A stretch of 64,000 nt of DNA, from NCBI GenBank assembly GCA_900088475.1, contig FLMG01002456.1:62001-126000 (forward strand), given 5' to 3'. Within the stretch, counting starts at the first letter, position 1. The number at the start of each line of letters is the position of its first letter. The notes under the pieces were generated by a model that did no database searches, was not told the DNA's origin, and worked only from the letters and a program-made list of their open reading frames with translations. Made by a program: the position numbers and the translations under genes. Positions 50,233-55,225 of the stretch are shown in pieces. Origin of the DNA: Hyphochytrium catenoides (taxonomy: Eukaryota; Protista; Hyphochytriomycota).

Positions 50233-53200
50233 ATGGAGGATGTGATGGAGGCTGCCAGTGCCAGGAGCCAACTTGCACAATGGGGAGAAGCTTGCAGTAG
50301 GGTTTTCTTTGGCGATCGCCCTATCGTACAACCACGGTTTAGACTCAAAACAGGCGAGGAAGCATATTGTATGGGTTGCGCTGCTCTGCACTTTGAAGGT
50401 AAATGTCGCCTGGCCTCACGTCAGTTCGGGCCGAAAGCATCGTGTTGGCAAAGTAGCACACTAACGTCTTGCAATGCAGAACCAATTAGCATTGCGAGGT
50501 GGAAGGAAACAATCAAACCAGAGTCGTGGGACGGATACGTAACAGATATCGAGATCTGCCAGGGAGACTTCAACGTCGAAGGTAGTCCAGGTTTCCAACG
50601 TATTCCACTGGACCTGAACAGTGGAGCAGGAGGCCTCTATGCCTATTTGTGTGTCCGTAAAGGTAGGCGCTGACCGTAGAGGTTCTGAACCCTGAGTATG
50701 CTGACTTCCGACCAGGCGGACGAAAGGCACCCATTACATCTATTCTTCTACAGTTTGGCGACCAGCCCACCAAAGCCGAACTTTTGCAAGAGGGATATGT
50801 GAGGTTGGCCCCAAACTGCAACGAAGGGAATCGTAGCTTAAGTCCTGTCTACGTCTGGTATCGAAGGCTGGCAGAATCACCTGTCGTTCCATCACCTGTG
50901 GTAGGCCAAGTCCTGCATTACGATGTCTCATGAGCCATCATCTGAGCCAGCTTCCCGTACAGTCTCGAGCAATACAAGACCTAGAAGTTATTAGGCAGGA
51001 TCTCGTATCAGCCAGTTCGGACTACTTAAGAATCCCAGGAAATCTGAACGAGGGCACCAACGGACCACCGATCCACATTTACGCCAGATGGGGTCTCTCT
51101 TTCCATTGTCGAAGTGCTCTAAACTAGCTCTTACGCTTATCTCTGCGTTTATTAGGAGAAATCGGTGCTTTCACGTGCGCCACAGAAAGAAGAGTGGGTT
51201 CTTCCAACTTCCTTTTTAAAGAACGGCTAGGGATTGAAACTTACGAAGCAACATCGCTGGAAGATTTATGGTGAGCATTTGAAGATATGGTAGGATGTAA
51301 ATGTAGTTTCTACTAATATGCATCAAGTGGGAGACTGGCGATGCAGTCGCTTTGCAAGAAGTTTGAAAGTATGGCCGAGCAGAGTGAGATGATGAGATTG
51401 CTTCAAGTCCAAGAAGCGAACAAGGTCCATCTACCTCCAAGAATCGAGAGCTATTGTAGGTGAGAAGTTATGAAAACCCTATTCGTTTTCTTTCCTACGA
51501 GACTGAGGTGCATTTGTTTGAGACAGGGCGACCACTATGTTTGAGAGCCCAGAGCGACAGGAGAAGGCATTGAAGGTGTCAACTCTAGGGCCGTACCTTT
51601 CAAGTGATGTTACTGATCCTTCGTGCGCTGCAGCATATCCCAGTTGAAGAATTAAAGGCTCAAGCGACAAGCTCCAGTCAAGATGAGGAAACTTACCAGG
51701 TGGCATCAACCAAGTTCTCTTACTTGTCTGGTATCATATTTAACCGACCTTCTCATGAAGGAGGAGCTCCTTAAAGGGCTTCTCAAGTGGTTCAAGGAAG
51801 AATTCTTCTCATGGGTCAATAATGCTCCTTGCGTTGCCTGCCGATCGCCTGAAACTCAAGGAATGTCGGGAGGAACTCCTACAGCGGAAGAGGTAATTCA
51901 TCTTTTTGTCGTCTTGGCGGATTTTGCTAATCCTAGACATTTGTAGTTGATGTACGGAGCTTCCCGAGTCGAACTATATCGGTGCACAGCGTGTGGCAGC
52001 GTCAGTCGATTTCCTCGGTATAACGATCCCGGTGCGTACATTCAAACACAGCTTTCAAGATCCGGGGTTAGGCTAGCGAGGTGACGTTCCGCTTGTCTAG
52101 CAAAGTTATTGGAGACAAGGCGCGGGCGATGTGGGGAGTGGGCCAACTGCTTCACTCTCTGTTGCCGAGCGATGGGCTTTGATGCCCGTTTTGTGATCGA
52201 TTTCACGGACCACGTTTGGACGGAAGTCTATTCCCTGAAAAGAAAGGTACTTCCCTCCAGATAGGCAGTCTCTCCTCTAGCTGCACACTTATACTCCTCT
52301 GGTCATAGCGTTGGATTCACACAGATTGCTGCGAGAATAAACTGGATACTCCCCTCATGTACGAGGTGGGATGGGGCAAAAAACTGACTTACGTCTTTGC
52401 CTTCTCCAGCAAGGAAGTCGTGGATGTAACCAGGTTATTATGATTAACTCGCAAAACCATGTCGTTAACTGCTAAACCATGTCCTTTTAGAAGGTACACT
52501 AATGATTGGACAGAAGTCTTGAAACGCCGGGATCAGGCGCCGGAAACCTGGCTGGCAGACTACATTCAACGCTTGGATCTCAAACAGAGGAACAACTGGT
52601 CGCCTAATGAGGAAGAAAAGCAGGCAGGATCAATACACTTCTCATCTATGGGATAAATAGCCAAATTAACCTTCCGTCAAGACGCTTTTGCGACGCAGAG
52701 CGGAGGAAGAGGTGGAGCTCCAGCAGCAGGTTGCACGAGGAGCTCAGATTAAGGCGGGCGAGCTGCAGGGTAGAGGTTCAGGTTCCAAGGAATGGCGAGA
52801 GTCTAGAAGAGAGCTTGGAGAGTCAAGAGCTTCCGAAAAGGTAGCTTGTCCTAATACATGCTTAAAGCTCGCCATTGACCGGAGGAAAATGCAGGAGACC
52901 GAGTTTGAGAAGCTTCAAGCTACACATATTGCCACGGAGGAAAAAGACTTGAATCCCACAAAAGTGCGACTTGAAATGGACTTCAAGAGGTGGGGACATT
53001 TAATACTAAAGCTAATGCTGCGTTGTCCCAGGATCTCAGGTTCTATGCAGGCTGTTTCGACAATTATCCATTGGGTGCGGTCTGCAGAGTTGTCAGAATC
53101 CTAACTGTGCCTCTAATACGCGTAAGTACAAACTGAAGGAAGCATCTTTGGTGGACATCAGTAACAGTGGTAATACTAGAGGTGGGCCCACACGACGCGA

Positions 53201-55225
53201 CGTCCGCGGCAGCTACATCCATCAAGCTGCTCAGCAATGGAGGACAGATTGCTATTTGCCCGGAGCCGGGTATGAAGATAATTACTGGGGCTTTCATCGA
53301 ACGATCTTGGATTGAGCTGTCTGATATTATAGGTTCCTTTTCGTGGAAATGTCGCAGTCTGACACCTACATTTTTCTGGCCCTTGTGCGACATGGAGACG
53401 AATGGTTTAGTGCTCAGCCAAGGGTTAGCCTGGGGCCATAAATTAGACATGACTAGAGTAGCTTGCAACAGACCCCTTCCTATGCACTGCGATCCTCTGG
53501 CTGTGGGCGCCCAGCTCAGTCTGGGTTCATTGATAGCATGTGGCATTGAGTCGAAGGTAAATGCTTTGCCAGTCACCTTGAGCGTACCATTGAAGGGTGA
53601 CATCACTATCCGTAAAGGATGATGGCAGGAAGTGGTCCGACTGTACCGTCCTTTTTTTAATGCGTGTCGAGGCAGCTTCGGTGGAGTACCCTTGTCCATT
53701 GGTCACTTTTCATCTGAGCCGGATTGAAGAGTGTCTGGTAAGTTTTTGTCTTATATTGCTGGGACTTTTAGCTAAGAGCATCGCTGTGCCTTAGGAGCCA
53801 GTCCAAATGGACCTCCTACTTGAACATAATAAGCTTAGCCTACGAGGTGTTGAGGTGGAGTCAGGCCGGTCTGACGTTGAAATCATATCTGGAAAAAATT
53901 ATTTGGTTACCCTGGGGGCTGAAGGCAAGAAGTGGCACTTGCGAGTGAACGGTGATGTCATCTGTTCCTGGACTTTGTCAAACAGAGTCGTAAAAGCCTT
54001 ATTCGCCTCACGGAGTGCTGGCATCTCAGTTTCGATTGCCTATTTAACGGTGTTGGAATATTGTTTAGAGGAGGCAAAACTATTGCCTCTAGTCCGTGAC
54101 GGTAAGCCAATTCTTATCTAGTATTTTTTCCGAAATTCTCAGGGCTACTCGGCCTTTGCCAGCTGCCAGTCCAGCTAAGCTGGCGCTGTCAAAACGACTT
54201 GGCACCCCACATGACAATGTCTTCTCCGATGTCGGACTCGCTGCTGCCCAGCCCTTTTCTGGGTTCAGATTGTCACACGTTCGAGGTAAGCGACAGCAAC
54301 AAGTGTGATTAGGAATGATTTGTCTCTTAACCCGGCAAACCTCTAGTTTGGCACGATGAATTTATACGTGGGATACAAGCAATGTACGAGGATGAAAATG
54401 GGAACATCGTGGAGGGTCCTACCCATAGGCAGACAACTGCCGGAGAGGCATCAGTCTTCAATCTTTCACGCGAAGAAGTCATAGTTGAGCTTCATGTCCG
54501 CAGCGGAGCGTGGATGGATGCGGTAGCATTTAGAACTAACCTGGGAAGGCAGCAACACTTTGGCGGCAACGGTTAGAGCTCCTTACTCTTCTCCAACCAC
54601 GGATCTGAATTGGTAACAGACTTTGCATTGATCTTTTTTGCAGGTGGAAGCCTAACGGTGCTTCAGGCCCCTCCGGGGCATGGTGTCAGAGCTTTTTTTG
54701 GTGCCTACGGCGATTGCATGCAGAATCTGGGTGTCGCCTCATATCCCTCTCCTGCTATAATTGAAGGTGCAGTTAGCGTAGAATAAGCGCAACGATCACA
54801 CCGCTTAACTGCCTTTGCACGAATTGCAGGTACTGTCTTTCGGACGCTTAAATGCTGCCAGAGGAGGCTCGCAGAAAAATCTCTCCAACAGGCCGTTGAA
54901 GCATGTAAGGCTATTATTTTTTATCTCAACAACCACCTGCTATACTAATCTTGGTTCTGACCTAGTAATAAAGTACATGAGCAACGTTGCTTCAAATCCC
55001 CAAGAGCCAAGATTCCGGTTAATACGCGTTAACAACAAATTCTTCCAGAGCAACGTGGGAGCGATAAGTTCAGATTCCTCGGAAAGCATAATGAAGGCAA
55101 TGGGTTGGGAAAAGCAGCAAAAGGACGGCGAGGAGTACTATTTCTTGCCAACCACCCTAAATGATAAGAGTGTTAGCTCTAGCATCGTCCAGCTCCTGGC
55201 ATTTCGAGATTCAGATGAGAGTTGA
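50233..55225 (+). CDS. PNG1: Multidomain peptide:N-glycanase: Cys-rich N-terminus, MABP, transglutaminase-like core, AZUL, uncharacterised beta region, jacalin, PUB
   Basis: Core [14 protein letters not shown], CxxC..Cxx[53 protein letters not shown]. The flanking exons splice in frame. The start codon is tentative. Confidence 0.9.

Follow-up and report, generated by a model that had tools for sequence, protein, structure and literature searches.

Here, we describe a multi-exon peptide:N-glycanase (PNGase) gene of Hyphochytrium catenoides, located in a 64,000-nucleotide stretch of contig FLMG01002456.1 (positions 62,001 to 126,000, assembly GCA_900088475.1; the window in what follows), and confirm by sequence comparison that it contains an AZUL domain split across two short adjoining exons of the plus strand. 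The best explanation, to which we assign a probability of about 60%, is that these exons are part of the mRNA and encode a genuine zinc-binding helix-loop-helix AZUL, which lies between the catalytic core with its PAW-like start and the jacalin and PUB domains and would work as the AZUL of the ubiquitin ligase UBE3A does. The AZUL and PNGase domains are each known; their combination is without description in the literature searched, where full-text queries pairing AZUL with PNGase, and queries on the domain architectures of AZUL proteins, returned nothing relevant.

Identity of the AZUL exons

Exon A (53040..53121, plus strand) translates to 27 residues and one further nucleotide, and would encode the end of helix 1 together with a Cys-x4-Cys-x4-Cys zinc knuckle. 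Exon B (53180..53269, plus strand) completes a Gln codon, continues for 29 residues and one nucleotide, and would supply the loop, helix 2 and the fourth zinc Cys, which is followed by Pro. An earlier note on this DNA, made from the letters alone, had claimed that all four zinc-binding Cys of the AZUL pattern are present, and indeed 4/4 ligands are found, with codons at 53076-78, 53091-93 and 53106-08 in exon A and at 53257-59 in exon B. In the spliced reading the spacing is C-x4-C-x4-C-x30-C, in which x30 depends on removal of the intron 53122-53179. The third-to-fourth Cys spacing is reportedly x28 in the human AZUL, and it ranges from about x26 to over x36 across 50 aligned AZUL second halves.

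Exon A by itself matches the AZUL hidden Markov model of Pfam (PF16558), a search that bears out the earlier note, at 30.5 bits against a cut-off of 23.8 (E-value 4.3e-7, profile positions 7-29 of 59), and frame 0 read without splicing reaches 32.6 bits. A profile of AZUL first halves gives exon A 37.3 bits, with a control maximum of 12.1. The only sequence matches of exon A in the PDB are UBE3A AZUL chains, to whose knuckle its own knuckle aligns, while a look-up of exon A in the ESM Atlas gave no usable match. Neither the wrong frames nor the antisense open reading frame (ORF) 53067-53699 match AZUL.

Exon B by itself has no match in Pfam and none in the PDB. We compared it with 50 AZUL second halves (third to fourth Cys) from metagenomic loci, combined into one profile; because these loci were fished with a DNA pattern that covers the first half only, the comparison does not depend on exon B. 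The score is 12.0 bits, aligned to AAakALeLfkskak..LCep and in keeping with the second-helix motif N-x-AAA-x-A-L-x-L-F/Y, and none of 19,040 stop-free 29-residue control peptides from the six frames of the window reaches this value, the best scoring 8.1 bits. When the two exons are entered as separate rows in a MAFFT alignment, each falls on the matching AZUL half, with the fourth Cys in the conserved Cys column.

The window domain has in common with the UBE3A/E6AP AZUL (PF16558; PDB 2KR1, 6U19, 8ENP) the QL[ST]xGCGxxxCxNxxCAS knuckle, the AAA..[LI].L[LFY] pattern of the second helix and the fourth Cys followed by Pro. It differs in a two-residue insertion before the fourth Cys, in a helix 1 start where KRAAAK is not recognisable, in its coding across two to three short exons, and in its position, which is internal in a PNGase, whereas the UBE3A AZUL is N-terminal to HECT.

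Gene model and domain layout

The earlier note had placed the domain on two exons. The Pfam score above the cut-off, the separate support for each half and their correct order and phase uphold its identity as AZUL. Helix 1, however, starts in the preceding exon, so that the domain extends over three exons. The acceptor at 53039, also proposed there, does give the AZUL frame and the phase for the next exon; it requires a donor at 52964, and the resulting intron 1 of that model (52964..53039, plus strand, 76 nucleotides, phase 0, donor aaa/GTGCGA) yields ...DLNPTK/VLCRLF. It is nevertheless not the only acceptor compatible with AZUL, as an alternative intron 1 of 61 nucleotides (52990..53050, plus strand, donor gag/GTGGGG) keeps the AZUL frame too, in which case the upstream exon ends at 52989 (...KVRLEMDFK). 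The first turns of helix 1 are encoded upstream of exon A, whose 5' edge may lie at 53040 or at 53051. Neither upstream reading, ...DLNPTK nor ...KVRLEMDFK, resembles the KRAAAK start of helix 1, and AZULs outside HECT proteins likewise diverge at this point.

Branch-like TACTAAA/CTAAT lies at about 53004-53016. Downstream of it, tandem AGs at 53031, 53039 and 53050 fall within 20 nucleotides; 53039 and 53050 are productive, with different donors, whereas the simple combinations that we checked for 53031 run into a premature stop.

Downstream, intron 2 (53122..53179, plus strand, 58 nucleotides, GTAAGT...TAG) begins with a perfect GTAAGT; use of another acceptor, at 53167, would lengthen the protein by four residues. 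Intron 3 (53270..53332, plus strand, 63 nucleotides, GTATGA...TAG) is in frame and stop-free, and could be retained. Exon B leaves phase 1, and exon C (53333..53556, plus strand), which matches no Pfam family, carries the frame onward. From exon C to the jacalin exon the frame stays open through introns of 61, 57, 61 and 61 nucleotides with good donors, which connects the AZUL reading frame with the exons for Jacalin and PUB. The introns of the AZUL region measure 58-76 nucleotides, similar to the 54-81 nucleotides found across the rest of the gene.

Exhaustive enumeration of unrestricted GT..AG chains gave 13,724 that stay open, and we therefore rejected the idea that the chain of the earlier note is the sole open one; it is the one with the consensus donor at 53122 and introns of gene-typical size (54-81 nucleotides). 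Codon-usage scoring mildly favours the AZUL frame of exon B and does not separate the frames of exon A. We infer that the AZUL exons are included in the mature mRNA.

Two further observations concern splicing elsewhere in the gene. The candidate introns 50398-50478, 52841-52894 and 53270-53332 (81, 54 and 63 nucleotides) are multiples of three and stop-free, so that retention of any of them would give in-frame isoforms. At 52624-52681, after the exon ending ...NEEEKQ, there is no in-phase GT donor, and a 58-nucleotide GC-AG intron (cag/GCAGGA ... caAG) would fit.

The catalytic core lies upstream of the AZUL exons. Its exon at 52103..52246 (plus strand; Pfam Transglut_core, 48.2 bits, E-value 1.5e-12) contains the GRCGEW motif with the catalytic Cys and the DHVW motif with the His, and the HTD motif with the Asp is found in the next exon, so that all three motifs are present. 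A segment at 52742..52840 (plus strand) weakly resembles the first 30 positions of PAW (Pfam, 17.3 bits, E-value 0.0045, below the cut-off of 31.4); the match is limited to these positions and covers a 17-residue motif just before the AZUL region. The exon between this segment and exon A (52895..52963, plus strand, a frame-2 open reading) encodes a charged linker ending in ...DLNPTK. A jacalin-like lectin exon (54349..54570, plus strand; Pfam Jacalin, 28.2 bits) and a C-terminal PUB domain, a p97-binding module (54977..55222, plus strand; Pfam PUB, 50.5 bits), follow further downstream.

The exons downstream of AZUL show no PAW match in the Pfam search. For about 215 residues after AZUL (exons 53333-53556, 53618-53737 and 53795-54101), Pfam gave no match and none of 1.84 billion representative proteins proved related; this region may be a very divergent remainder of PAW. 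At the N terminus, four exon pieces within 50233-51096 match neither MABP nor any other Pfam family at E-values up to 1. The Pfam search of the gene, which finds Transglut_core, Jacalin and PUB, finds no HECT domain: the gene is a PNGase and not a UBE3A homologue. The earlier note spoke of recruitment of AZUL to a glycosidase. Recruitment into a PNGase is supported by the Pfam match, both halves, their order and the splice phase, although a PNGase is an amidase and not strictly a glycosidase.

Animal PNGase consists of PUB, a transglutaminase core and PAW, and yeast PNGase is a Rad23-bound core. Similar to the cytosolic PNGases (Png1/NGLY1), the window gene has a core with the Cys and His motifs, a PUB and a weak PAW start, and it would share their presumed role in endoplasmic reticulum-associated degradation (ERAD) between p97 and the proteasome. 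The PUB is N-terminal in Png1/NGLY1 and C-terminal in the window PNGase, which also differs by a jacalin-like lectin and by an AZUL placed behind the core. A review of NGLY1 names PUB, PAW, thioredoxin, BAR and ubiquitin-like domains as accessory domains, and AZUL is not among them (PMC9102325).

AZUL domains outside HECT ligases

Metagenome contigs scanned for QL[ST]xGCGxxxCxNxxCA in back-translated form gave 103 loci, nearly all of them true AZULs and most of them AZUL with HECT. All N-terminal AZUL ORFs that were tested and have visible context carry HECT (11/11), in agreement with the earlier note's statement that AZUL is known mainly from HECT ligases. At one locus (L033, metagenome contig Ga0065711_1027689) the AZUL stretch is identical to that of human UBE3A; we took it for human contamination of the metagenome and left it out of all later analysis.

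Five AZUL ORFs with visible context lack HECT (L089, L013, L051, L062 and L065). L089 encodes a ubiquitin-like domain, a PNGase-type core and a C-terminal AZUL (44.8 bits), and protein searches widen this group to P0003-P0007, P0024 and P0025, from JGI, ENA or Logan assemblies. P0007, P0024 and P0025 retain the catalytic triad (GRCGEW, DHVW and HCD). The P0007 contig is compact, intron-poor and eukaryotic, and a structural model of its AZUL (P0007:520-594, alignment A2; predicted local distance difference test score, pLDDT, 83) superposes on 2KR1, giving a root-mean-square deviation of 1.5 A and template modelling (TM) scores of 0.67/0.77; its significant PDB matches are UBE3A AZUL structures only. 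In P0003-P0006 (P0003 is encoded by L089:10383-12014:+) the catalytic Cys and His are lost (GKREEW and similar) and AZUL is kept; to judge by these sequences, the four are likely pseudo-enzymes retained as adaptors.

In this environmental family, which also has a Cys-rich region, AZUL follows the core and a weak PAW start, as in the window; P0025 has such a start, equally weak, ahead of its AZUL. Unlike in the window gene, AZUL ends the protein, jacalin and PUB are lacking, the genes are intronless in a compact genome, and four members are pseudo-enzymes.

The remaining non-HECT ORFs (L013, L051, L062 and L065, the last at L065:31-2313:-) and the proteins P0026 and P0027 are UFD1-like proteins with AZUL and form a second home of the domain outside HECT ligases. 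The four ORFs combine UFD1_N1/N2, XAF1/TRAFD1 zinc fingers and AZUL, and in two of them a C-terminal UBA comes right after AZUL. These proteins resemble the window PNGase in belonging to the p97 pathway, in lacking HECT and in carrying AZUL away from the N terminus; they differ from it in catalytic or adaptor context and in the placement of AZUL directly before UBA. Public metagenomic protein sets thus already hold the PNGase+AZUL architecture, with Pfam labels but without protein names, and the fusion is not a one-off, given both the PNGase+AZUL and the UFD1-like+AZUL proteins in public metagenomic data.

Is the window PNGase a close relative of the other AZUL-bearing PNGases? The best pairwise partners of exon B include P0007, P0024 and P0025 at ranks 1, 3 and 5 of 85, while neither exon A nor the catalytic core favours these three in this way. 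A special kinship of the core with AZUL-bearing PNGases was rejected, as ordinary PNGases are at least as close to the core, and both a shared and an independent origin of the fusion are therefore possible.

Docking, rival explanations and significance

In UBE3A, two AZUL helices pack on two induced helices of RAZUL in the proteasome subunit Rpn10; A29, I33, Y37, A67, A69, residue 70, L73 and Y76 contact RAZUL, and K25 and R26 clamp its acidic end (PMC7064531). The hydrophobic contact positions are mostly kept in the window domain: I33 corresponds to L, Y37 to F, A67 to S, A69 to A, residue 70 to A, L73 to I and Y76 to L. The human residue numbers follow the vertebrate row (L091) of alignment A2 combined with the human sequence. 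The positions of A29, K25 and R26 fall in the upstream exon and are not conserved in either splice model. The comparison suggests that the hydrophobic groove is kept and the electrostatic clamp is not.

On the favoured explanation, the AZUL helices would, as in UBE3A, make up a hydrophobic groove in which a helical partner from the ubiquitin-proteasome system is bound. A shuttle-factor UBA domain or a RAZUL-like Rpn10 tail would be the likeliest candidates. Attached to p97 by its PUB and docked through AZUL, the PNGase could sit with the p97 unfoldase on one side and the proteasome on the other, where it would remove N-glycans from ERAD substrates. A preprint reports that AZUL weakly binds the UBA domain of ubiquilin (UBQLN) (bioRxiv 10.1101/2022.09.29.510132). 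Because the groove is kept, because of this reported binding and because AZUL adjoins UBA in UFD1-like proteins, the domain would most likely serve to dock a helical protein from the proteasome pathway, alongside the p97-binding PUB. By analogy with UBE3A, docking of this PNGase on the proteasome itself is plausible.

Several points weigh against this explanation. The first AG past the branch-like motif (53031) is out of the AZUL frame, and the donor required at 52964 is a weak one (GTGCGA), although the catalytic core itself splices at a GTGCGT (52031). The score of exon B is low among held-out second halves of true AZULs; since these span -1.5 to 26.9 bits, this half is divergent yet within range. 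Neither the basic clamp of K25 and R26 nor the KRAAAK start is recognisable in either 5' model. The argument for docking is drawn from the AZUL side, as the Rpn10 of this organism lies outside the window, and RAZUL is absent from fungal Rpn10 and has been described for 'higher eukaryotes' (PMC7064531). Finally, a phmmer search with exon B, the in-frame intron and exon C found no orthologue among the 1.84 billion representatives, a collection from which this genome and its close relatives are apparently absent, and returned two spurious repeat proteins only.

The strongest of the rival explanations, which we nonetheless consider rather unlikely, is that the AZUL is real and translated and serves as a zinc-stabilised structural hairpin, or binds some other partner, for example a different stretch of the PNGase itself, a cofactor of p97 or a factor for localisation, instead of docking to the proteasome or a shuttle factor. 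That the two basic residues touching RAZUL at its acidic end are not conserved fits this idea, as does the internal position of the domain next to the weak PAW-start motif. Moreover, the retention of AZUL in the four metagenomic PNGases that have lost the catalytic Cys and His points to a role of AZUL independent of deglycosylation. However, the residues of the hydrophobic groove are retained, and all contexts in which we found AZUL are ubiquitin-proteasome or p97 proteins (HECT E3 ligases, PNGases and UFD1-like proteins with UBA).

It seems improbable that the AZUL exons are a relic or a cassette that the main mRNA skips, leaving a PNGase without AZUL. An in-frame chain that does so exists, for instance through a 368-nucleotide intron at 52990-53357, and the unfavourable first AG and the codon usage that fails to separate the frames of exon A would both be compatible with skipping. 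Such an intron would be about 4.5 times as long as the longest other intron of the gene, however, and the four Cys, both helices and the canonical splice sites, including the perfect GTAAGT at 53122, are intact; a decayed relic is unlikely to keep two separately significant halves in phase. Chance resemblance of a Cys-rich peptide to AZUL, to which the shortness of the pieces (27 and 29 residues) might lend some appeal, is effectively refuted by the E-value of exon A against all of Pfam, by control peptides none of which matches the score of either exon, by a degenerate AZUL DNA motif that occurs once in the window with 0 expected, and by the right order and phase of the halves inside a gene of the ubiquitin-proteasome pathway.

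AZUL has been described as unique to E6AP among E3 ligases (PMC7064531), and research on it has dealt almost exclusively with how it brings UBE3A, the Angelman syndrome ligase, to the proteasome. Only tentatively, and with more doubt than confidence, we propose the broader view that AZUL is not private to UBE3A and is instead an old, portable docking module that plugs p97 and ERAD factors (PNGase and UFD1-like proteins) into the proteasome or shuttle factors, with one PNGase here forming a physical bridge, in which PUB would reach p97 and AZUL would reach Rpn10 or a UBA receptor. The PNGase-AZUL combination is a testable lead and not a new kind of system, and AZULs in PNGases and UFD1-like proteins are natural experiments on what the domain recognises. 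The architecture suggests that deglycosylation can be wired directly to the proteasome; if this is true, a single PNGase would do alone what the Png1-Rad23 complex does in yeast.

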